Below are positions 1 through 35,586 of a stretch of 64,000 bases of DNA, piece after piece. Each line of letters starts with the position of its first letter. Position 1 is the first letter of the stretch. The notes beneath the pieces are model-generated. The model was not told where the DNA came from. It did not search any database and saw only the letters and a list, made by a program, of their open reading frames with translations. Position numbers and translations under genes: made by a program. The DNA lies in the IMG/VR virus record IMGVR_UViG_3300023184_000024, positions 186,001 through 250,000 of that record; one strand, given 5' to 3'.

Positions 1-3000
1 TCGCCTTTGCTGGCCAAGTTTAGTAATCGATTTTTAAACTTGGTATACTCTTGACTGTTAAACTGTATAGAATTAAACAATTCGTACTGCTGTCGACGTA
101 AAAACGTACCAGTCAATGCCAATGGTGCAGAATGTTGTACAATATTATCACCGTAAGGAATAATATTGCCCAGATCTCGAGTATTATTGGCACCATTGAT
201 TGGACCGACTATGCTTTTTAAATTTTGTACCATGCTTTCGTAATGTGTACGAATGGTACCAAGTGTGTAGTTTGAACTATTTTCGTTTAACGGATTATTT
301 TCTAAGTTTAACGGAACCTGGTAGTAACCAATATTGCTGGCCACTGCACTGAGTGCCTGCACTTCAACGACTGTGCCAACAGGCACAGTTGATGTAAAAG
401 TAATCTTAGTTCCAGTATTGCTGATTTCAGTTGTGTAATTTTTTGGGTCAATGAAAACTGACTCAACAAAAATCTGCAACGATGGATACACAGTGTTGGT
501 ATTCACTGGTACATCCAATACCAATGGCTCTCCGTTGTATGTAAATCTAAAAATTTGTCTGCTTTGATTTGGTGCGGCAGCTGTTTGCCATCCTATTAAA
601 TCAGAAAATTCAATCCTGTTTTCGTACTGTCTTGCAAACCCAGTGCTGACATATTGTTCAGTGCTGACATTGTCGCGAACAAAAATAAATTTATCAGTAT
701 AGAGATAGTTTTCAAATACAATATCTCCTACATTATTAAGATTTGCATATTTTAATGCAAATCCTAGTATTTCATCAACAGTCTGTGTCCCGCCGAATGC
801 ATATCCAAATAACTTAGATCCAGTGAATGTACTACTTGGGTACACAGCACGATTGCTAAAACTTACACCATTGTTATCATATATTTCAAACAAAGGTGGC
901 TGATTAACGTCAATTTTAGCTTGCGCCTCTAACCAATCTACTCCATCAAACCAGAAACTTTTACCCTGTTGTTTAACTCCGCTTAATGCCACCACTGCCT
1001 GATTGATTTGTATTTCGCCAGCCGAGTCTGGGATTAAATCTATTATCTCTGTGCCAGACAATGTGGGATCAATGAATCGAACTTCATAGACTCGATTTCT
1101 GACCTGGGGGTCTTTGTCTGATGCAAATATAACGCGGCTACCGTCGATAAAATTATAGCCATCGGTGCTAAAACCCAATTGCCCATTGATGTTTGACAAT
1201 GCATCTGTTGTTGTATAATCAATGATGTCTACCGGGCTTATGCCCTGGGTGCCGTAATTAAACAATTTGACGTTTGCTCTAAATTCAACAATTGGTCGTT
1301 TTGCTCTAAATTCATTGTTAAGCAACGGTGTTTGATTGTTGTAAGTTGCGGCAGCACGTATTACATCAATGTGGAACCATCGATTACTACGGCTCCATGC
1401 ATTTCGATCCTGTGCAGATCTGTTGATTGTAATATAATCAGGCACTAGAGGTGCATCAAGTGCAGTATCGTAAGCGCCATCGTCGAACCCTGTACTATCA
1501 TATGGCAAGGTCAGATTTTTTGTGTATGTTTCAGGAGTAACCAACGATTGTGTTGGTATTAATACAATTCCGTTTCCTATTGATGTGTTAACCGTGGGTT
1601 CTGTAGAAAGCGGTGCTCCTAGTGGAGTCCCAAAGCCATAGAACTCTAAGCTTTCTTCAACTGTTTCGTAGATATACTGCTGGAAATAACCTGTTGCTGT
1701 TGCGCCGGTAATTTTTCTCCCATTCATAATATGGAATGGACCAAAGTATGCGCGGCCGTCGATGAAACCAACACGCTTGTTAATACCAAGTCCCGTGCCC
1801 ACTCCCTCAACATAGAATGTTAAATTTTGGTATGTTGACGGTTCAGTTGTGCCACGAAACACCACTTTTAAACCGTTGGTAAATTCTACGCCATTTGGGC
1901 TTGTATATGTTTTTGCCCCGATGATGTCATTGATGTCAACTGGCTCGGCAATTTCAGAGTCAATTAATTTAATAACACCAAACAGTTCTGGGTTGGTACT
2001 ATCCTGATAATACAGCACATCTTGCACTGCTGTCAGCAACGGTGCTTGTTCTAGGAATCCTGACGCATTTTTATACCAAAGAGTGTTGCTATACGTGGCG
2101 CCATAGGAAATTCGAAATTTATTCAAAGAAGGAATTTCTGCTATGTTGTTTAAAACCATGTAGGGTCTATTATCATAGTCATAGACATAACGAATTTGCC
2201 ATATGCTGTATCGTTGGCCGGCAGTGCTAATGTTTGTTGTTTGATCAAACAGCAGTGTGTCAAAACTTCCATTTAATCCAGTGTTTTCAGACAAGTCTTT
2301 CAAGGGATCAAACGGCGTTGTCACTTGCCAGCCGCCTTGTTCTGAGTCTTGTACAGTGTTGGCAAATACTATTGTGCGACCATTGAGTGCTGTTAGCCCA
2401 TCAATCCCGTTGGGGTATTCCGTAAGAAAAGAATCAACATAAACGTTATTAATTTGATTAAATTGCAAATATGTTAAAAGATCCACTGGTTGTAGATCCG
2501 GCATACTATAGTAAAAGTTTTGTGCAGTTTTTAACGGAACATACAACTCTACCTGGCCCGTTTCTTGACCATTGTTGATCGCTCCTAGCACATCTCGGCT
2601 GCTGATATTTGGAGACGCCGGCATTCTTCCTTCAACTCCGGGCGCTGCCTGTATCCAGAATTTATGCCCAGGTTGATCTAATGTAAATGTGTAATTTCCG
2701 CCACGTACCAATGTAATAATTGGGTTTGTGCCAGCGTTGCCTGATAGTGTGTATCCTGTGATACTACGTGTAACTGTAAAATCGTTGGTTGTTGGAATAT
2801 CAACAGTTGCTACGTTTACAGGTTCAGGGCCGCCCGGAAGCCAATAATATTGACTGTAGTTACTAAATTTATCAAAGTCGCAGAACGGATCCCATGTGTA
2901 GTACTGACTTTCAAATAACCGATCTTGTTTAACTGTTTCGCTGCCATGCACGTTGAGTGCATCGATAATGCCTGGATAAGTTATTGCATCATAGGATTTG

Positions 3001-3245
3001 TCTGAATCGGGTTTCTGAAAAACAATGCCTGGTTCAAGTTGATAATCTGCTCTTGTTGCTGTTTGCTCAGTTACATAATAGTCAGCAGGGTTTACACCCG
3101 GGCCAACTCGTCGGCCAACAAATCCCTGTGTGCGTTTAACACTGGGTTCTTGTGTGAGCTGATCTAAAGTGGCTGCTAAAAATTTTCTGTTCGTGTCAGT
3201 TCGAAAAATTTCTGGTAGTAAGTCTAAGGTACGACGTGTTGCCAT
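1..3245 (-). CDS. Large baseplate/structural protein, runs off the left edge (C-terminus missing)
   Basis: Not in the ORF track. ATG at 3245 reads MATRRTLDLLPEIFRTDTNRKFLAATLDQLTQEP... and starts 2 nt after the gp6-like stop. Function inferred from position in the baseplate module. Confidence 0.7.
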   Translation of the reverse strand, partial: MATRRTLDLLPEIFRTDTNRKFLAATLDQLTQEPSVKRTQGFVGRRVGPGVNPADYYVTEQTATRADYQLEPGIVFQKPDSDKSYDAITYPGIIDALNVHGSETVKQDRLFESQYYTWDPFCDFDKFSNYSQYYWLPGGPEPVNVATVDIPTTNDFTVTRSITGYTLSGNAGTNPIITLVRGGNYTFTLDQPGHKFWIQAAPGVEGRMPASPNISSRDVLGAINNGQETGQVELYVPLKTAQNFYYSMPDLQPVDLLTYLQFNQINNVYVDSFLTEYPNGIDGLTALNGRTIVFANTVQDSEQGGWQVTTPFDPLKDLSENTGLNGSFDTLLFDQTTNISTAGQRYSIWQIRYVYDYDNRPYMVLNNIAEIPSLNKFRISYGATYSNTLWYKNASGFLEQAPLLTAVQDVLYYQDSTNPELFGVIKLIDSEIAEPVDINDIIGAKTYTSPNGVEFTNGLKVVFRGTTEPSTYQNLTFYVEGVGTGLGINKRVGFIDGRAYFGPFHIMNGRKITGATATGYFQQYIYETVEESLEFYGFGTPLGAPLSTEPTVNTSIGNGIVLIPTQSLVTPETYTKNLTLPYDSTGFDDGAYDTALDAPLVPDYITINRSAQDRNAWSRSNRWFHIDVIRAAATYNNQTPLLNNEFRAKRPIVEFRANVKLFNYGTQGISPVDIIDYTTTDALSNINGQLGFSTDGYNFIDGSRVIFASDKDPQVRNRVYEVRFIDPTLSGTEIIDLIPDSAGEIQINQAVVALSGVKQQGKSFWFDGVDWLEAQAKIDVNQPPLFEIYDNNGVSFSNRAVYPSSTFTGSKLFGYAFGGTQTVDEILGFALKYANLNNVGDIVFENYLYTDKFIFVRDNVSTEQYVSTGFARQYENRIEFSDLIGWQTAAAPNQSRQIFRFTYNGEPLVLDVPVNTNTVYPSLQIFVESVFIDPKNYTTEISNTGTKITFTSTVPVGTVVEVQALSAVASNIGYYQVPLNLENNPLNENSSNYTLGTIRTHYESMVQNLKSIVGPINGANNTRDLGNIIPYGDNIVQHSAPLALTGTFLRRQQYELFNSIQFNSQEYTKFKNRLLNLASKG

Positions 3246-3247
3246 TG

Positions 3248-6200
3248 TTAAATGCTCCCCGTTGGGTCGGATGATATGTCGTTGGTCCCTGATTGGCTTA
3301 CCGTGGTTCCTAGTCTTCCCACAGATGTTGTTGGATACAATCCAGCCACTGAAGTTTGACTACGTATATTACTTTGAGTTAGTGCGTCAATGACCACAAC
3401 ATCACTGACAGTGGCAGCACTTACAAAAATTTGATTAGGCGCTGATCGTACTTCATACAAATCACCAAATGATTTTAATGGATTCAGTGGTACCAATACA
3501 ACACTGCTGACGATTGACCCCATGCGTTCGTGTATATAAGCGGCCAACTCTGAAAAATAGAAACTGTCGCCAAAGTCCCATTTATCAATGGTAAAATAAT
3601 TATTAATGTTTGCAATCACTTGACTACGTATCTCACTGTTACTTGCCACAGTATTTAATGCCTTGACCACTTTGATGGTTGCACGTAATTGTGTCGGAGC
3701 CTTGGCACCAAACAATGGCTGAAAGCTCACTGGGTTTAGTACAATATTGTCGCTGATCATTTTATAATCATTGAGTTTAGAATACGCCGCTGTTAATTGT
3801 TGTATAGTAGGCGTCTGAGGTTCAGGCACAGTGCCGGTGGTATCTTTGATATAATTTTGATAAGAATTATAGTAATCTTCTGTGACCACATACAAATCAA
3901 TAATGTTTGTTGCACCCGGATCAATGACATTGGTCAGTGCACTGTTGTGTCTGTATTGGAAGTACAAATCTTGTCTACCAGTTCTGGCAATAAACGTACT
4001 GATGGGCACCAAGGTTCGTACAATTATACCATTGGTAATTTCAACTAACAGTTGATAGAATAATTGGCTGGTATATGCGTAGAATACTTGTCCGTCAACA
4101 AATTCGCTTTTGACTAGTTGAATTGCATCTAGTGTTGGAAACGAGCTGTTTACAACTCCTTTTTCAACTGGCAAATATCTTTCAAGGTTGTCAAAGTCAA
4201 CGGTTTGTTGTAAAAATACTAATTTAGTACTGGGGTTCACATTTGGTGCCACAATTTCATTGAAGAAATCTGGGTTGTCGGCCACACCATCGGCATCCGA
4301 GTCTGCATAACTAACAACAACTTCATAATCGTTGACAAAGCCGTCGCTTTGAATTGGTTGCCCAATGATATCCAATGTTAAATCTGCATACAATGGTTGA
4401 TTTGAATCTGGCTTTGAGTTGGTTTTTAAAACTTTTACAAAATCGTTGATTACCAATCCTGTTTTACTGTCATACACTTCTTCGCTACCATCAAAATAAA
4501 ATCTTGTTTGTAACACACTGGCAAACACGTAGTCAAGTGCCCGTGATGATACTGTGTATTTTTCACCATCGGTAATAAATTGTATCAGCCAAGATGCATC
4601 AAGGTTAAGCCCTTGTTGATTTTGTGCATTTGCTAGACTAAACGTTGTGCCTTGAGCTAAGTTAGTGCTGGTAATCAAGTACCAAGTGGCAGTAACATAA
4701 TCATATCCGATGCCAAAATTTCGATATAGCTCAATTTGCTGTATCATTTCTTGTTGCAATGTCACTGACAAGTCATTGACAAACTTTGGAATAACTTGTG
4801 TGGCCAATGCGCCAGACGGTACAAAATTATTAACGCTAACTGGGCCAACCCCGTTGTTAAAATTACCCAGTCCTTGGTTAGTCCCATCAACTACTACCGC
4901 AGTGACCGTGGCCCATATAAGTAATTTCTCATCGGCTCGGACTGGTAGGCCTTCTTGTAATCTATTATTTGCATCAAAGAAATATCCAGCAGGTGGCTCA
5001 AATTTAACTAAACTGCCTCTGGTAACATACTTGGTATTGTTGCTACTGTATGTTCCAATTGATTTTGGATTGCTTGTACTGCCTGAATAAAAATATCCAG
5101 TGGTTTCGTTGACTTGTGTAGTGCTTTGATTCCATGCAAGACTTAAGACAGCCAAGTTTGGCCTAGGGAAGTTTGCATAATAAAACTGTAGCATGCCTCT
5201 GGTTGTCAACAATGGTTCCGCTGAATTTGTTAGCACGTCAGCAATGTCATTGCGATTTAACCAAGTAAAATCAAATGTCGGCAATGCATCTTCCTTGAAG
5301 AGCACTCCGTCTGAAGAAAAAATATTAGTACTTGAATATTTTCCAGTAATGTCAGTTAGGTCAATGTATCGACTTGTGCCGGTACTGGATCTTGCAATTG
5401 CTTTACTTTTTAAAATACTGTTATACTGGGTAAACGGAAAGTTATTATAATCTTCGCCGTTGACCATACGATTTTGAGTATAGTAACGTGCTGGAGCACG
5501 TTGTTTAATTTCTTGTATGCTTTCTCTACTTTGTGCATTGCTGACTGGTGTTGTAATGCCACAAGTAAATGTCATTGTTTCAAGTCTGCCTACTCGGCTT
5601 ACATAACTGATTGGAATTGCAACTGACTGCATTTCTTCGGGATTAATAATATATTTTAATCCATTGCTGGCTCTGACGTATGAACGGAATAACCCTACTG
5701 GTACTTCGGCAAATACCCCATCAGCAAATGTTAATGTAATTTGGTCATTGGCTCGGCTGGTAATAGAATATAATTTTCTCTTGTCAGGTGCAAGTTGTTC
5801 TACTGCTCCAGCAAAAATATTTTCTGAGTATGCCCACTCACTGGCAATGCTGCCAAGGTCATCTAGCTTGTATAACCAATGGTCCTGATTGTTACAACCT
5901 TCAATGTTGATGTTAACTGTGCGATTGGGCAGTGCTTCGGCCAAGTTAAAATCTTGATTCTGTAATACACCTTGTTTGAACAAAAAGAAAAAGCCTGTGC
6001 TATCGCTGGCAAAGCCAAGTTGATCGTTTCTGTACAGAATATTAAATGCGCCACTGGGTTTAGGTGGCGGCTCATACACATATTCTCGTCCTTGAGTAGT
6101 TCCACTAACTGCTTCAAACGGCATGTTAATTCCGTCAACTGTGGCGTTATAAGGAATAACTGGTAAAAATCCCGGAATTAAGTTTACAGTGTACTCTTCG

Positions 6201-29010: not shown

Positions 29011-29445
29011 ATGACATGGCTTTATCAAAACACCCCAGTTGAGACATTGCCCGAAGATTGTATAGGATTTGTTTATCTAATCACAAATACAACCAGCTCA
29101 CGCAAATACATAGGCAAAAAACTAGCAAAATTCTCCAAGACTACACAACGAACAGTTAAACTCAAGAATGGTACCAAGAAGAAAAAAAAGATTCGCAATA
29201 AAGTTGATTCAGATTGGCGAGACTATTATGGGTCTAGTCCTGAACTTAGCAAGGATGTGGAACTTTTTGGCAAAGATAATTTTATCAGAGAAATACTTTA
29301 TTATTGTAAATCAAAATCAGAATGTAGCTATATTGAGGCAAGAGAACAATTTTCAAGGCGTGTATTAGAATCATCAGATTATTACAACGGGCATATTCAA
29401 GTCCGTGTTCATGGTTCTCATATCAAAGACAAACTAAGCAATTAA
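29011..29445 (+). CDS. Stand-alone GIY-YIG nuclease
   Basis: GFVYLITNTTSSRKYIGKK, YYGSS, conserved E (YIEARE) and YYN; 144 aa with no C-terminal DNA-binding domain; Lys-rich insert. Confidence 0.8.
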   Translation: MTWLYQNTPVETLPEDCIGFVYLITNTTSSRKYIGKKLAKFSKTTQRTVKLKNGTKKKKKIRNKVDSDWRDYYGSSPELSKDVELFGKDNFIREILYYCKSKSECSYIEAREQFSRRVLESSDYYNGHIQVRVHGSHIKDKLSN

Positions 29446-30257: not shown

Positions 30258-30692
30258 TTACTCCAGTGGTCCTAGTATTTCAAATCCTGCCATATCAGAT
30301 TTGTATAAGTGTGCTTGTTCAAGATACAGGTATTTAAATCCGCGTTCTTTGTAGATAGCACACTCTGTTTGTAGTGTTTCAATGCCTAACCGCAACTTAG
30401 GATTGTTATAATTCCATGCAAATTGATCGCAAAGAGCATTCTCTTCATCGTAGCGTTTGATTAAACTAAATGCCACCAGCTTGTCTTTGTCGTAGTATCC
30501 TATTACATCTGTCATGGGATCTGTATAACGGCTATCAAAGATGGGCATTACTGATGCAAAGTGTTTGTACTTGCAGTAGTCTCGGTAGATTAAATTCAGC
30601 TTTGAAATGTCAGGTGATTGTAGATATTCCCACTTTACGCTTATATCGTAGTTGGTTTTGCTTAAATCAATTCTGGCAAACTGATAACTCAT
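30258..30692 (-). CDS. GNAT-fold protein resembling the C-terminal domain of Arg/Leu-tRNA-protein transferases (ATE1/Bpt)
   Basis: YDKDKLVAFSLI...LRLGIETLQTECAIYKERGFKYLYL...YK; start placed at ATG 30692 (ATGA overlap). Confidence 0.55.
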   Translation of the reverse strand: MSYQFARIDLSKTNYDISVKWEYLQSPDISKLNLIYRDYCKYKHFASVMPIFDSRYTDPMTDVIGYYDKDKLVAFSLIKRYDEENALCDQFAWNYNNPKLRLGIETLQTECAIYKERGFKYLYLEQAHLYKSDMAGFEILGPLE

Positions 30693-31192
30693 GCTCGTGG
30701 GTCCTGTCTGTGTGCAAACAACGACTGTAGATAGTCTTCGGGCCAAGAGTTGTAAAATCCTTTGTTGGCCATCAATATTGCTTTAGTATTAAGATCACTT
30801 AAACTTTGCACCAGTGCCAATGCATAAGTTCCTTGATTCATACAAACACCGTTGACCATTTCAACATCGGCAGGATGATCTTCTAGTGCCAGTAAATCGG
30901 CAGCAAGTAAAAATTCTTGATTGGCCTGTTCTAGGCTACTGGCAAACAACTCACGCGACCATTCCACAGGGTTATACACATATATAATAACTTCCTTGTT
31001 GCCTAGTCCGTACCGTGCTCGATTTTTAAGATCGTAGTAAGGATCACTGCCAATGAACACATCGTAGCTGTTTTTTAATCGAGCACTGCGAGCATATGGG
31101 CAAGGAGGAAACCCTCCTAGTGCTGGATGTGGAACTTCTATAAAGTTCACAATCCACTGCTCTATGTCTTGTTTAACTTGTTCAATGTCCAT
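30689..31192 (-). CDS. DUF1415-like protein
   Basis: IEQWI......PCPYA...DHP motifs; start at ATG 31192 (TAATG overlap). Confidence 0.5.
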   Translation of the reverse strand: MDIEQVKQDIEQWIVNFIEVPHPALGGFPPCPYARSARLKNSYDVFIGSDPYYDLKNRARYGLGNKEVIIYVYNPVEWSRELFASSLEQANQEFLLAADLLALEDHPADVEMVNGVCMNQGTYALALVQSLSDLNTKAILMANKGFYNSWPEDYLQSLFAHRQDPRA

Positions 31193-31404
31193 TAGAACCA
31201 ATTTAATCCAGTTTTCTTAGTAGTTTCAATATTTTCTTTGATAATACCACTGATGAGTTTTCGTTCATCTGGGCTTAGATTCATTGCATCGTTGTAGCTG
31301 AGTCCGCCTCGCATATACCAAGAAAATTTTAGTGCCTCTTGCCTGATACTTTCGCAGTCTTTGTCCATTCTCTCAATGAGTTTGGTGATACCGCCAGAGT
31401 CCAA
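31192..31404 (-). CDS. gp51-like baseplate/tail assembly ORF, probably made as a -1 frameshift extension of the gp26-like gene
   Basis: WYMRGGLSYNDAMNLSPDER motif; TTG start without SD; in the -1 frame of the upstream slippery site. Confidence 0.6.
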   Translation of the reverse strand: MDSGGITKLIERMDKDCESIRQEALKFSWYMRGGLSYNDAMNLSPDERKLISGIIKENIETTKKTGLNWF

Positions 31405-31406
31405 GG

Positions 31407-32249
31407 CTAAGAGTTGGATTCGAAAAAATTTGTCATATCCAATGTAAATGGTTGTTCAAATTTGGTCTGACATGCAGTGCAACTAATGTTAAGTGGCACA
31501 AGTTCAGTGGATTTTTTCAAATCAACTGCATGATCCCTGACTTGATTAAACACTGCTCTTGTGCAGTTGTTCAACCATTCTTCTATGTGTGCAGTTTCTG
31601 TGACCATTGCATCTGGAGTGCGAATAGACGATATACTTTCTGCAATGCTTCTCACTGTTAGTTTGGCAATGTTGGCAAAGGCAGAGCCTAGTCGCGTCAT
31701 CTTTTCTTCTTCGCTCAATTCTGCATTTTGTAACAACTGCACAAGCTTTTGATCTTCAAACTGCACTTGCCCTAGTTCATTGACTTCTTTGTAGTTCATG
31801 GGCTCAAAATATATTTCAAGTCCAGATGTTTTTAAACAAGCTGAATAGTCAATGGGGCGAATATTTTCCAACACAGTACGTAAATCCAAGCCGTATTCTT
31901 GAGCATTGTCGCATTTAGGACACCTGGTGTCAATTTCCATGGTGTGCCCATAAGTGGCAATCCTGATGGCCACTAACAATGTGTCAAGGTCCACAGATGG
32001 GGTTGCCCACCCGTCTTTGATATTGGGCACACAGCTTTCGATAATTTTTACTGTGGCTGATCCATTGAACAGCGCATCGGGTGTTCTACTAGTGACTTCG
32101 TCAATGGCAGTCATTGGGTATATAGGTAATTCGTTGTTGGGCGGCATGTTAATGGTGCCGGGCGCCCAGAATTTGCCCTGTGACGGCAAGCGAATGTAAA
32201 TCACCGGCTGTCTAAAAAATTGTTTTAATGGATTGGTGTTTTCTTGCAT
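31407..32249 (-). CDS. gp26: Baseplate hub assembly protein, T4 gp26-like
   Basis: LPSQG, PMTAIDE, DLDTLLVAIRIATYG, two CxxC pairs, terminal NFF; start placed at ATG 32249. Confidence 0.75.
   Translation of the reverse strand: MQENTNPLKQFFRQPVIYIRLPSQGKFWAPGTINMPPNNELPIYPMTAIDEVTSRTPDALFNGSATVKIIESCVPNIKDGWATPSVDLDTLLVAIRIATYGHTMEIDTRCPKCDNAQEYGLDLRTVLENIRPIDYSACLKTSGLEIYFEPMNYKEVNELGQVQFEDQKLVQLLQNAELSEEEKMTRLGSAFANIAKLTVRSIAESISSIRTPDAMVTETAHIEEWLNNCTRAVFNQVRDHAVDLKKSTELVPLNISCTACQTKFEQPFTLDMTNFFESNS
31422..31428 (-). other. Slippery heptamer T_TTT_TTC (programmed -1 frameshift candidate)
   Basis: In-frame X_XXY_YYZ four codons before the stop; -1 frame is open into the downstream ORF. 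Confidence 0.65.
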
Positions 32250-32289: not shown

Positions 32290-35200
32290 ATGGATGAAAG
32301 AGAATTTGAAGAAATAGTCCGGAAGCTCAATTCCGGACTGACACTGACTACTGAAGAAATGCTCAAGCTTTCGGCAGCAACAGGCTTGACTATTAATGCG
32401 TTAAAGCAACTCAAAGACAGTGCCAAAACAGCAGGACTTGATGTTGGTAAAAGTCTAGGAAGATTAACCAAAGACGTTGGGGCTGGGTCTGCATCTTTTC
32501 AATCACTAAACCCTATAATAGACTCTGTTGCCAACGGGCTTGGCAGCATGGCCGAAGCCATACCATTTGCTGGCAAAGCTATTTCGGGCAGTTTAAAAGT
32601 AGTAGCCGAAGGCAGCAAGTTTGTAATTGACCAGCTACAGAAAACAGTCAACACATTCAATGAACTAGGGCAAGTTGGTGGATTAACTGCCGACGGCATG
32701 ACCGGGCTACAACGCCAATTCTTAGCTTCGGGTATGAGCCTAGATGGGTTCAAGAAATCAGTGGTTGACAATGCAGGCGCATTGGCAAAGTTTAGAGGAA
32801 CAGTGGGCCAAGGTGCCGAAGACTTTAGCAAGATAGTCGGCGGAATAGTTGACAGTGGCGCTGGCACTGAACTGCGTAGAATTGGGTACAGTGCTGATCA
32901 AATTGGTGAAACCACAGCATCGTTTGTTGCCATGCAAAATAGACTGGGCATGACCCAGGGCAAGACAAATGCACAGCTAACAAAAAGCTCAGTTGAGTAT
33001 GCCAAAGAACTAGATATATTGTCCAAGATAACAGGACAAAGTCGCAAGCAAGCACAGGCGCAGATTGATTCTGCATTGAGTGAAAGTAGATTCCGAAGTA
33101 CCATTGAATTGATGAATCGTAACAATCAACAAGGTGCAGCCAAAGAATTAACATTCTTTCAAAATCAAGTATCCAATGTCAACGATGAGTTGGGACAAGC
33201 TGTGCGTGATATTTCATCGGGTGTGTACGACAGTGAAGCTGTTTTAAAATTTGTACGTGCCGGAGTTGACCTTGAAAGTGTGGTCAGTGGCATCAAAGAC
33301 GGCAGTCTAAAAGCCAACGATGCAATAACACAGCTACAAAAATCAACGCGAGCAGTTGAGCAAGAACAACTAGAATTTGCACAGTACGTCAAAGAAGGCG
33401 AATCACCGTTTCCCAATCTAGCCAAACAGCTGGAATTTAATACAGCACAATTAGAAAATGGTCGATTAACAGCAAAGAAGGTTCAAGATGCCCAAGTTGA
33501 AGGACAGGACAAATTAACCAATTCAGCGGTTGAAGCTCAAGTGGCTATGGAACAGATGACTCGACAGCTGGCAAATTTTGGATTTGGTGCTATGCCTGCA
33601 GCCACCGATGCTGTGGTATTGTTCACTGATTCTCTCAATGAGTTTATCAAATATGTTGCTGAAAAAACTGGTATTGAGTTGCCTAGTATCACCGGTGGTG
33701 CAGTCAGGGAAAACATACCTAAGCCCGGCGGGGATGCGGCAAAAACTGCACCCACAGCGGTTAAAGCTACAGCAGAATCTAGAAAAGCACAGGCAGTGGC
33801 CAAAGCAAAGGCCGAACAAGTACTTACATTAACCAAACAAGAGGACGAGGCAAAACAACAACTTCGTCGGATGGAACTGGCAAGAGCGCCTGAAGAAGAA
33901 CTCAACCAACAAAAAGAAAAATTAGCTGCCTTGGGCAAGTTTAAACTGCAAGCCGAAGAAGACGAACGCAAACAGGCCATTGCGGCAGCACAAGCAGGAC
34001 TTGAAGCTAAAAATGAACGTCAGCGTGTGCGTAAGTTGCAGAACACAGCAACTTCAGCAGATAGAGAAGTGACTGCCGCACAAAAAACTGTTGATGAATT
34101 AAGGCTTGAACAAGCTCGTTTAGAAATTCAACAGCGTGATAATCCCACAGCATCTCCTGGGCCAGTTGATGCAAAAGTTACTAGAACTCGTGAAGCCACC
34201 GAAGCAAGGAAAAAGGCCGAGGCTGCGGTAGAAGCTGCCACAGCAGAAAGAAAACGACTCGAAGATGAAAAGGGCCGCGCCGCAGAAGAAACCAAAGCTG
34301 CCAGAGTAGCTGAAATGAAGGCCAAAGACGACGCTGCCAAAGCCAAGGCAGCCGAAGAACTTAGCCGCCGTCAACAAGGGCAAGTCAGCGGCCCTGGTGA
34401 CAGTAGACTGGTTACTGTGGAAAAAGAATTGGCTGCGGCTGAACGGACTCTTAAAGAAAAAACCAACAATCTCACTGAAATCAGAAAAGAACTTGGTGAT
34501 GCAAGCAAATCTGGTGTTGCGCCAGAAAAAAAGTATGCCAAAACAATTGAAAACTTAATCATACAAGCCGAGTCAGGCGGTAAAAACATCAACACTGGAA
34601 TCAAAGATGCGTCGGGCAAGCCAACAACCACAGCAACTGGAATTGGGCAATTTACCAAAGGTACGTTCGAAGGTGTTGCTGGCATGGCCAAGCCAGGCGA
34701 ACTGTTACACGGCAAGACATTTGAAGATTACAAAAAAGACATCAACATTCAACGAGAAGCAGTTACCCAACTAACTGGGTTCAACAAAAAACAACTGTCA
34801 TCAAGCGGGTATGATCTCAGCGATCGTAACGTGTACTTGGCACACTTTTTAGGTGCCAACGGTGCGGCACGAGTTTTAAGAGCCAGCGACACTACACCGA
34901 TCAAGGATGCAATTAACTCTGAATCATATGAGTCAAATTTGCCACTGTTTGAAAATGTAAAAAATCCTATCAGGACAGTGGGTGATCTCAAAACCTGGAC
35001 AGATAAAAAACTTGCTCAAGCATCCAGTGAATTAGACAAATCAACTGGTGAAGATATAAAAATGGCCTTGGGTGGCATAATCACTGCTAAACCAGGTGGC
35101 ACAAAAGTCACAGTAGGAGAAGCAGGGTTTAACGAAGCATTTGTACCGTTACCCGACGGCAAAACTATTCCAGTGTCAATGGACAAGTCTTTTAAAGAAT

Positions 35201-35586
35201 TTGTCAAATATCTATCAACACTAGATTCTGAACAATTAGCCAGATCCAACTCTATGTCGACGGACAAGTCATTTCAGGAGTTTTCCAAATATCTAAAATT
35301 GGATTCTGATCGAATAGCTGGGGTAGCAAACAAAAATTTTGAACAATTTCCTTCTATTCGCAATGAGTTAACTAGTTTGGTTGACATAGTCGGCGAACAA
35401 GAACGCACATCACAAGAAATATTACGAACTACAATAGACACATTTAGCAAAGAGATTGTCAAGGCATTGACGCCCACAGTTGGAATGCAAGGTCCAGATG
35501 TTGCCATATTGCTAGAGCAATTGATTAATTTACAACGTGATAACAACCAAACATCGCAGAAATTGTTACAGGTAACTCAGAACTAG
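32290..35586 (+). CDS. Tape-measure-like protein with lytic transglycosylase-like domain
   Basis: 1098 aa, helical A/Q/K/E-rich; AESGG...ATGIGQF..GTF...YLAHFLG lysozyme-like motifs; VGEAGFNEAFVPL motif common in tape measures. Confidence 0.7.
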   Translation: MDEREFEEIVRKLNSGLTLTTEEMLKLSAATGLTINALKQLKDSAKTAGLDVGKSLGRLTKDVGAGSASFQSLNPIIDSVANGLGSMAEAIPFAGKAISGSLKVVAEGSKFVIDQLQKTVNTFNELGQVGGLTADGMTGLQRQFLASGMSLDGFKKSVVDNAGALAKFRGTVGQGAEDFSKIVGGIVDSGAGTELRRIGYSADQIGETTASFVAMQNRLGMTQGKTNAQLTKSSVEYAKELDILSKITGQSRKQAQAQIDSALSESRFRSTIELMNRNNQQGAAKELTFFQNQVSNVNDELGQAVRDISSGVYDSEAVLKFVRAGVDLESVVSGIKDGSLKANDAITQLQKSTRAVEQEQLEFAQYVKEGESPFPNLAKQLEFNTAQLENGRLTAKKVQDAQVEGQDKLTNSAVEAQVAMEQMTRQLANFGFGAMPAATDAVVLFTDSLNEFIKYVAEKTGIELPSITGGAVRENIPKPGGDAAKTAPTAVKATAESRKAQAVAKAKAEQVLTLTKQEDEAKQQLRRMELARAPEEELNQQKEKLAALGKFKLQAEEDERKQAIAAAQAGLEAKNERQRVRKLQNTATSADREVTAAQKTVDELRLEQARLEIQQRDNPTASPGPVDAKVTRTREATEARKKAEAAVEAATAERKRLEDEKGRAAEETKAARVAEMKAKDDAAKAKAAEELSRRQQGQVSGPGDSRLVTVEKELAAAERTLKEKTNNLTEIRKELGDASKSGVAPEKKYAKTIENLIIQAESGGKNINTGIKDASGKPTTTATGIGQFTKGTFEGVAGMAKPGELLHGKTFEDYKKDINIQREAVTQLTGFNKKQLSSSGYDLSDRNVYLAHFLGANGAARVLRASDTTPIKDAINSESYESNLPLFENVKNPIRTVGDLKTWTDKKLAQASSELDKSTGEDIKMALGGIITAKPGGTKVTVGEAGFNEAFVPLPDGKTIPVSMDKSFKEFVKYLSTLDSEQLARSNSMSTDKSFQEFSKYLKLDSDRIAGVANKNFEQFPSIRNELTSLVDIVGEQERTSQEILRTTIDTFSKEIVKALTPTVGMQGPDVAILLEQLINLQRDNNQTSQKLLQVTQN

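Follow-up and report, generated by a model that had tools for sequence, protein, structure and literature searches.

A putative frameshifted tail-hub chaperone gene of the gp26/gp51 type in a giant freshwater phage

A stretch of 64,000 nucleotides from a giant freshwater phage (IMG/VR record IMGVR_UViG_3300023184_000024, positions 186,001 to 250,000; hereafter the window) was analyzed around a pair of overlapping reading frames on the minus strand. The genome is a complete 352,754-bp phage with terminal repeats. The following features were recognized at the locus:
31407..32249 (-), zero-frame ORF of 280 aa, a T4 gp26/gp51-family hub assembly protein (short product), including the TAG stop at 31407-31409
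31422..31428 (-), slippery heptamer T_TTT_TTC (U_UUU_UUC in the mRNA), in register AA[T TTT TTC]
31410..31421 (-), four zero-frame codons (GAA TCC AAC TCT) between the heptamer and the stop, the unconserved tail of the short product
31192..31422 (-), -1 frame extension of 76 codons (RIQLLALD...GLNWF) plus TAA at 31192-31194, the C-terminal tail of the predicted long trans-frame product
32290..35586 (+), divergently transcribed gene of a 1098-aa tape-measure-like virion protein, the presumed client of the chaperone pair
30689..31192 (-), downstream gene (167 aa, function unknown; phrog_28122, E 1.8e-11) whose ATG overlaps the TAA of the -1 frame extension (TAATG)

The zero-frame ORF starts with ATG at 32249 and its last sense codons before the four-codon tail are ACA AAT TTT TTC. 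The heptamer occupies the X_XXY_YYZ register and the -1 frame is open from upstream of it to 31192. Reading of the -1 frame from C31422 gave RIQLLALDSGGITKLIERMDK... for 76 codons, so that the products would be 280 aa and 276+76 = 352 aa. The only conventional start codons in the small ORF were TTG 31404, which has no Shine-Dalgarno sequence upstream, and ATG 31368. This confirmed the sequence features reported in the initial annotation, which had proposed a probable programmed -1 frameshift fusing a gp26-like and a gp51-like ORF, head-to-head with a tape-measure-like gene.

Profile searches assigned the 280-aa protein to the Pfam family PF12322 (T4_baseplate; E 7.7e-15, 55.6 bits against a cut-off of 24.5, residues 57-276) and to phrog_150 (E 2.5e-13). 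It was the single match to this family in the phage genome. A DNA-level search of phage records with the locus found nothing, and relatives were detectable only at the protein level. A total of 6464 homologs were found, of which the 120 best are 274-298 aa long. Two Cys pairs (C110/C113 and C257/C260) were nearly invariant and F275 and F276 were invariant in alignments that include T4 gp26. The AlphaFold model of the protein has a pLDDT of 88.7 and a pTM of 0.83, and the extension is predicted to be helical (pLDDT 90). However, structural comparisons revealed no meaningful relative. No PDB sequence match was found, a Foldseek search of the PDB with the tail gave no meaningful relative, Foldseek and wide VIA-align searches with the body gave only generic helical-hairpin matches (Z of 8.2 or less in VIA-align), and no fold match for the tail was found in the BFVD viral library.

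In order to assess whether the heptamer is maintained by selection, homologous loci were compared. The heptamer was invariant and in the same register in 92 of 92 jumbo-type loci, in 79 of 79 cyanophage-type loci, and in S-SSM7 and Aeromonas phage Aeh1. Together these are 173 of 173 loci, representing 142 unique proteins with identity down to 14%, 19 clusters at 60% identity and 6 at 40%, and the 8 different preceding codons all end in T. In the 92 jumbo-type loci the preceding codon encodes 8 different amino acids, whereas the next codon takes 16 forms and starts with G in 91 of 92. In the 79 cyanophage-type loci the preceding codon is GAT or AGT and the next codon always starts with G. As a control, Phe-Phe pairs elsewhere in the same ORFs were examined: only 15 of 52 (29%) are encoded by TTT-TTC, AAT accounts for 49% of Asn codons, and Ser(AGY) codons end in T about half the time. 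The heptamer together with the next G formed the only zero-entropy nucleotide run in the scanned positions -12 to +27 around it. Moreover, where no frameshift is needed the FF dipeptide decays to FL, FV, LL, VF, LF or IF and the codons are not slippery, so the strict FF elsewhere is a constraint at the nucleotide level.

Protein conservation switches to the -1 frame exactly at the slip site. The zero-frame tails after FF are 1-11 codons long and not conserved, with only their first base G fixed, which gives Arg (CGN) in the -1 frame. In contrast, the -1 frame is conserved from its first codon (FFR-x-[RQK]-LL), and R1 and L4 are invariant in a gapless 76-column alignment of 65 homologs. Third-position entropy exceeded that of positions 1 and 2 in the -1 frame for extension codons 1-5 and 6-17, upstream of any ATG. 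The prediction of the initial annotation therefore passed the test it had itself proposed, namely that homologs should keep both the slippery codons and the -1 frame relationship.

Comparison with bacteriophage T4 revealed that gp26 and gp51 are paralogs of this family. T4 gp51 hits PF12322 (E 3.9e-52) and phrog_150 over positions 13-280 of 282, T4 gp26 hits phrog_150 over positions 14-235 of 282, and BLASTP of gp51 against gp26 gave an E-value of 2e-6. The gp26 proteins stop just after the FF position (...EFFELL* in gp26), like the short product. The trans-frame products align colinearly with four T4-type gp51 proteins, including the junction (KLLVNPDEI against KLLISEPEEI or RLFVLEPEEI) and the P/S-x-ER-x2-[IV]-x2-LI motif. 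The C-terminus of gp51 hits phrog_634, the family of the cyanophage and Aeh1 -1 ORFs. However, the small ORF of the window alone has no Pfam or PHROG hit, and its inferred homology to the gp51 tail rests on colinearity, shared motifs and one profile-profile comparison: hhalign of 78 jumbo tails against 50 T4-type tails gave E 1.7e-4 with a probability of 49%. Less rich profiles were uninformative. A 12-sequence tail alignment against whole T4 gp51 or gp26 gave probabilities below 1%, and the 65-sequence alignment against the gp51 C-terminus or against a 4-sequence tail alignment was also weak (E 0.28 and 0.036). The label gp51-like in the initial annotation needs qualification but is probably essentially right, as the small ORF occupies the position of the ORF that cyanophage annotators call gp51 (phrog_634), which matches the C-terminal tail of T4 gp51. 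It is not a positional equivalent of T4 gene 51, which is divergent from gene 26 in T4.

Interestingly, six genomes with the heptamer have one PF12322 gene, whereas four T4-type genomes without it have two. The initial annotation had contrasted the pair with the separate genes 26 and 51 of T4; these turn out to be diverged paralogs without a slippery site that appear to correspond to the short and long products. The body studied here is about 70 aa longer at the N-terminus than in T4 (280 against 208 aa) and the tail is about 25 aa longer than the gp51 tail. The cyanophage gp26 plus small gp51 gene pair (Kyanoviridae, T4-like gene clusters 11 and 12) and Aeh1 gene 26 show the same arrangement and the same heptamer, with a -1 ORF that begins FFRL... 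and one PF12322 gene per genome. Their tails are shorter (60-69 aa), the zero-frame tail is a single codon, and most cyanophage copies also have an ATG three codons after the slip, which annotators use as the gp51 start.

The comparative evidence strongly suggests that one gene yields two proteins by -1 programmed ribosomal frameshifting, although this is inferred without expression data. In the proposed mechanism, most ribosomes read through the heptamer in the zero frame to UAG and release the 280-aa short form, whereas a fraction slip back one base on U_UUU_UUC, with tRNA-Phe in both the P and A sites re-pairing on UUU UUU, and continue as ...N-F-F-R-I-Q-L-L... to the end of the 352-aa long form. 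Neither a conserved downstream stem-loop nor an upstream Shine-Dalgarno-like stimulator was found: RNAalifold returned no consensus structure, and the z-scores were -0.5 (mean across homologs) and -1.67 (window). The efficiency is therefore probably low and set mainly by the heptamer. Such an element is not obligatory, and lambda G/GT likewise seems to lack a strong stimulator.

The function of the pair may be inferred from T4 and by analogy with lambda G/GT. T4 gp26 and gp51 are listed as hub assembly chaperones (PMC3004832), the GenBank record of phage AM101 calls both "tape measure protein assembly chaperone", and T4 literature and GenBank notes treat both as non-virion hub or tape-measure assembly chaperones. 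The 1098-aa neighbor matches the virion structural protein family phrog_14121 (E 8.7e-10), and its nearest named protein-atlas clusters are tape measure families (score 0.94), but BLASTP revealed no similarity to T4 gp29. Its homologs CBB_251 and PA5oct gp335 were detected in virions by mass spectrometry. As indirect evidence for a non-virion role of the pair, CBB_250 is missing from the CBB virion table that lists CBB_251, and PA5oct gp336 carries no mass-spectrometry flag whereas gp335 does. By analogy, the shared body would act on the neighboring tape-measure-like protein, the helical tail, present only on the minority long form, would contact a second tail or hub component, and the frameshift would fix the ratio of the two forms. 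Prediction of a complex between residues 1-700 of the tape-measure-like protein and the 280-aa body returned no verdict and is not evidence for or against binding.

The initial annotation had interpreted the pair as a G/GT-type frameshifted chaperone. The analogy to lambda G/GT and P2 E/E' (PMC5009743) holds for architecture and neighborhood only, that is, two overlapping ORFs with a slippery heptamer a few codons before the upstream stop, an expected majority short and C-terminally extended minority product, and a position next to the tape-measure gene. No sequence or fold similarity to known tail assembly chaperone families was found, as PF12322 was the only Pfam hit, and the pair is not a member of the lambda G/GT protein family. 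The body has 276 aa with two Cys pairs, against about 140 aa for gpG, and the heptamer is U_UUU_UUC, not the G_GGA_AAG of lambda. Moreover, the gene does not lie between the tube and tape-measure genes but is divergent from the tape-measure-like gene, with a 40-bp gap between the two start codons. It lies head-to-head with the operon that contains the tape-measure gene, as T4 gene 26 does. Of the phage relatives whose annotated neighborhood was inspected, seven have the gene next to a large protein gene, head-to-head in Phosso, PA5oct, XaC1, CBB and GAP32 and with the large gene downstream in S-SSM7 and Cygsa01, whereas Atu_ph07 has no such gene beside it.

An alternative, considered unlikely, is that the small ORF is translated on its own by re-initiation or translational coupling at TTG 31404 or ATG 31368, giving a free protein of about 58-70 aa and no fusion, with the TTTTTTC run only reflecting a conserved Phe-Phe. 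An ATG overlaps the zero-frame stop in Atu_ph07 and Phosso, an ATG at extension codon 3 is present in 77 of 79 cyanophage-type loci and annotated as the gp51 start, and phage Cygsa01 has the small ORF with its own ATG (TAATG coupling) and no heptamer. A free-standing small protein is therefore viable, and independent initiation may coexist with frameshifting. However, in the window the position matching the Atu_ph07/Phosso ATG is ATC, and the jumbo clade has no conserved start, the first ATG being at codon 1, 6, 12-18, 32, 36 or 40, or absent. Residues and codon periodicity are conserved upstream of every candidate start, three wobble positions of the heptamer are invariant although synonymous alternatives are common elsewhere, FF is not conserved in the non-frameshifting paralogs, and T4 gp51 shows the fused form as the functional long protein.

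Transcriptional slippage is similarly improbable. Homopolymer runs are known slippage sites (PMC5009743), and one extra U in the T6 run would yield exactly the same N-F-F-R... fusion protein. However, the run is 6 T, in a fixed register and followed by an invariant C, in 172 of 173 loci, whereas bacterial programmed transcriptional slippage probably requires about 8-9 or more in most cases. Selection keeps the exact register and the terminal C rather than lengthening the run, and only one locus has CTT TTT TTC, which gives a run of 8 T. A sequencing or assembly artefact, or a decayed in-frame gp51-like gene, can be dismissed despite the error-prone nature of homopolymer runs and the single in-frame ORF of T4 gp51, because contigs from an independent study span the T6 run without gaps, the same break occurs in 173 loci including isolate phage genomes, and none of the 120 best homologs is an in-frame protein of about 350 aa.

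The single frameshifted gene is probably ancestral, with the T4 lineage having duplicated it and fixed one frame in each copy. A broader reading, which we consider somewhat more likely than not, is that the -1 frameshift is the ancestral way in which the whole T4-like and jumbo myophage superfamily makes its tape-measure or hub chaperone pair. This would identify gp26 and gp51 as the missing G/GT counterpart of T4 and would provide a natural example of a programmed frameshift replaced by gene duplication. Frameshifted tail assembly chaperones are regarded as a near-universal feature of long-tailed phages, to which T4-like phages appear to have been the conspicuous exception, and the roles of gp26 and gp51 seem to have stayed vague for decades. 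No published report of a gp26/gp51 frameshift was found by full-text searches, which did not cover most subscription journals, or by targeted reading of the PA5oct omics paper, the PRFect paper and the 2016 recoding review. On this broader reading, thousands of cyanophage and jumbo-phage genomes would mis-annotate the long product as a separate gp51 or hypothetical gene. Every GenBank record inspected that annotates the small ORF gives it as a separate CDS, whereas PA5oct and Aeh1 leave it unannotated.

The minus strand of the window carries an ORF of 280 aa, which ends ...GAT ATG ACA AAT TTT TTC GAA TCC AAC TCT TAG. Within this end the heptamer T_TTT_TTC lies in the X_XXY_YYZ register, and reading from C31422 in the -1 frame gives RIQLLALDSGGITKLIERMDK... 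for 76 codons. The features of the locus are as follows:

ATG 32249 to TAG 31409-31407, minus strand: zero-frame ORF of 280 aa
31428-31422, minus strand: heptamer T_TTT_TTC
C31422 to TAA 31194-31192, minus strand: -1 frame extension of 76 codons
31190-31194, minus strand: TAATG, in which the ATG of the next gene (167 aa, phrog_28122, function unknown) overlaps the TAA of the extension
32290-35586, plus strand: gene of 1098 aa, likely but not proven to be tape-measure-like
29011-29445, plus strand: ORF of 144 aa in an otherwise minus-strand stretch, with a GFVYLITN...KYIGKK motif

The two products would be 280 aa and 276+76 = 352 aa, in agreement with the initial annotation. The gene downstream is coupled to the end of the frameshift ORF and not to the zero-frame stop. 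The window is part of a complete 352,754-bp phage genome with direct terminal repeats, which was assembled from lake water. Contigs from an independent study span the T6 run without gaps, so the frame break is real DNA.

The 280-aa product matched Pfam PF12322 T4_baseplate (E 7.7e-15) and phrog_150 "baseplate hub". Its relatives among isolated phages are jumbo myophages, namely Atu_ph07, Phosso, PA5oct, XaC1, CBB, GAP32 and the Rak2-like group, at about 28-32% identity. A large protein database contained 6464 homologs, of which the 120 best are 274-298 aa long. The gene lies head-to-head with the 1098-aa gene, which is followed by genes for portal, prohead protease and major head protein. The 1098-aa protein has no Pfam hit and shows no BLAST similarity to T4 gp29. 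However, its nearest named protein-atlas clusters are tape measure families (score 0.94), and its homologs in CBB and PA5oct are abundant virion proteins by mass spectrometry, so that its designation as tape-measure-like was accepted as likely but not proven. The protein also contains an AESGGKN...ATGIGQF stretch, and its nearest atlas clusters combine tape-measure and SLT lytic transglycosylase families, although no Pfam SLT hit was obtained at E 0.01 or below.

In order to test the frameshift by comparison, homologous loci were collected from isolate genomes and from IMG/VR, and the 3' end of each was examined. All 92 jumbo-type loci (83 unique nucleotide sequences) carry exactly T TTT TTC in the same register. 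The codon before it takes eight forms (AGT, AAT, CAT, ACT, GAT, CGT, CTT, GCT), which encode eight different amino acids and all end in T. Only one locus, the IMG/VR contig L086, has CTT TTT TTC, giving a run of eight T. The codon after the heptamer takes 16 forms and starts with G in 91 of 92 loci, and this G completes an Arg codon (CGN) in the -1 frame. Accordingly, the residue after FF in the 120 database proteins is D, E, V, A or G, which are all encoded by G-initial codons.

Conservation switches frame at the heptamer. Zero-frame tails after FF are 1-11 codons long and unconserved, whereas the -1 product is conserved from its first residue (FFR-x-[RQK]-LL...) and is 76 codons long in 84 of the 89 loci where it is complete. 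It aligns without a single gap across 65 sequences, with R1 and L4 invariant. Nucleotide entropy showed third-position periodicity in the -1 frame from extension codon 1 onward, and the seven heptamer bases plus the next G form the only zero-entropy run in the scanned stretch, positions -12 to +27 around the heptamer. Moreover, short pieces (37-40 nt, at least 90% identical) of otherwise unrelated contigs in three lake metagenomes match only the stretch around the heptamer (31420-31456), which fits exceptional nucleotide-level conservation of the slip region among co-occurring relatives.

As a control, codon usage elsewhere in the same ORFs was determined. Phe is TTT 66% of the time, other Phe-Phe pairs are TTT-TTC in 15 of 52 cases, and Asn is AAT 49% of the time. 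Amino-acid constraint alone would therefore preserve the heptamer in roughly one lineage in seven. The first ATG in the -1 frame wanders (codon 1, 6, 12-18, 32, 36, 40 or none), and the jumbo clade thus has no conserved start. ATG 31368 (codon 18), which the initial annotation had named as a possible independent start, lies downstream of conserved coding sequence.

T4 gene 26 (208 aa) ends ...GAG TTC TTT GAG TTA CTA TAA, giving EFFELL*. This FF aligns with the FF of the window's gene, but the codons are not slippery, and gene 25 follows. The T4 RefSeq record also annotates an internal in-frame start in gene 26 (26', positions 2803-3090 of our T4 locus L015) that gives a 95-aa C-terminal product, so that T4 gene 26 also yields two products, by a different route. 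T4 gene 51 is divergent from gene 26, and the small ORF is therefore not a positional gene 51. Nevertheless, T4 gp51 is a member of the same family. It hits PF12322 with E 3.9e-52 and phrog_150 over profile positions 13-280 of 282, whereas gp26 covers 14-235, and BLASTP of gp51 against gp26 gave E 2e-6. The extra C-terminal part of gp51 hits phrog_634 "baseplate hub assembly catalyst". Interestingly, phrog_634 is also the family of two small ORFs that sit in the -1 frame behind a heptamer: the 63-aa ORF that cyanophage annotators call gp51, directly after cyanophage gp26 and behind GAT TTT TTC GCC TAA, and an unannotated 69-aa ORF after Aeh1 gene 26, behind GAT TTT TTC GAC TGA. A scan of IMG/VR with cyanophage-type queries gave 79 of 79 loci with the heptamer in register. 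Across all 173 loci there are 142 unique proteins, which form 19 single-linkage clusters at 60% identity and 6 at 40%.

Alignment of the trans-frame products with four T4-type gp51 proteins was colinear across the junction. The junction motifs correspond (T4 gp51 ...VFKLLVNPDEI..., CBB ...FFRTKLLISEPEEI..., Atu_ph07 ...FFRMRLFVLEPEEI...), and the alignment continues through a shared P/S-x-ER-x2-[IV]-x2-LI motif, whereas the gp26 proteins stop two or three residues after the junction. Profile-profile comparison of 78 jumbo-type tails against 50 T4-type tails gave E 1.7e-4 and a probability of 49%, which is moderate support. The window's tail does not hit phrog_634 by HMM.

Copy number was then compared with the presence of the heptamer. 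The window's genome, Atu_ph07, PA5oct, CBB, S-SSM7 and Aeh1 have one PF12322 gene and the heptamer, whereas the T4-type genomes T4, KFS-EC, AM101 and avDM3 have two PF12322 genes and no heptamer. Pseudomonas phage Cygsa01 has one PF12322 gene per genome and no heptamer (AGC ATT TTC ACC TAATG; positions 1190-1382 of its locus, L104). Its phrog_634 small ORF has its own ATG overlapping the stop, which appears to be a third solution, coupled separate genes, besides the frameshift and the duplication. In the two-gene phages the FF position itself decays, to FL, FV or LL in gp26 and to VF, LF or IF in gp51, and the codons there are not slippery. This argues that the strict FF elsewhere is a nucleotide-level requirement. 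A maximum-likelihood tree of the body domain grouped the T4-type gp26 and gp51 proteins together (support 91/97), with the gp51 proteins forming a clade (100/99) and Aeh1, the cyanophage and the jumbo phages lying outside. The simplest reading is that the frameshifted single gene is ancestral and that a duplication in the T4 lineage fixed one frame in each copy. As the tree has only 18 rows and is midpoint-rooted, this is an inference, which we consider somewhat more likely than not.

These observations make it highly likely, in our view, that the site is a real programmed recoding signal. The best explanation, inferred without direct expression evidence, is tandem -1 slippage of two tRNA-Phe on U_UUU_UUC, giving a majority short form and a minority long form. 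No conserved stimulatory structure or Shine-Dalgarno-like element was found, and low efficiency is therefore expected, as for lambda G/GT. Transcriptional slippage that inserts one U would give the same protein; it is disfavoured by the short run, the fixed register and the invariant C but, in the absence of RNA data, is not excluded. Independent initiation of the small ORF cannot explain the conservation upstream of every start codon, although it may coexist with frameshifting where an ATG abuts the stop (Atu_ph07, Phosso, cyanophages) and has apparently replaced it in Cygsa01.

T4 gp26 and gp51 are listed as hub assembly chaperones, with gp51 required for assembly but absent from the particle (PMC3004832), and the GenBank record of phage AM101 calls both "tape measure protein assembly chaperone". 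In lambda, gpG and gpGT are made at a 30:1 ratio, G binds the tape measure protein, the T domain binds the tube protein, and neither protein is in virions (PMC5009743). The anatomy of the window's locus, a frameshifted pair next to a tape-measure-like gene, fits this paradigm. By analogy, the body would hold the tape-measure-like protein and the helical tail would recruit a second tail or hub component. The G/GT-type reading of the initial annotation is a functional analogy and not family membership. The AlphaFold models are good (body pLDDT 88.7; tail pLDDT 90, helical) but have no solved structural relative, no tail-assembly-chaperone Pfam family is hit, and the gene is divergent from its presumed client. 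The absence of CBB_250 from the CBB virion table, and of an MS flag on PA5oct gp336, agrees with a non-virion role but is weak evidence.

What distinguishes this locus from lambda G/GT is that the same logic is most likely realised in an unrelated protein family of T4-like and jumbo myophages, and that T4 appears to split the two products into paralogous genes. No mention of a frameshift in gp26/gp51-type genes was found in full-text literature searches, in the 2016 recoding review, in the PRFect paper or in the PA5oct omics paper, although most subscription journals were outside these searches and a prior description cannot be excluded. All inspected GenBank records annotate two separate genes or omit the small ORF. 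In PA5oct (positions 3352-3576 of its locus, L016) and Aeh1 (positions 1411-1578 of its locus, L101) the -1 frame extension ORFs are not annotated at all and appear as unexplained intergenic gaps after the "baseplate hub" gene.
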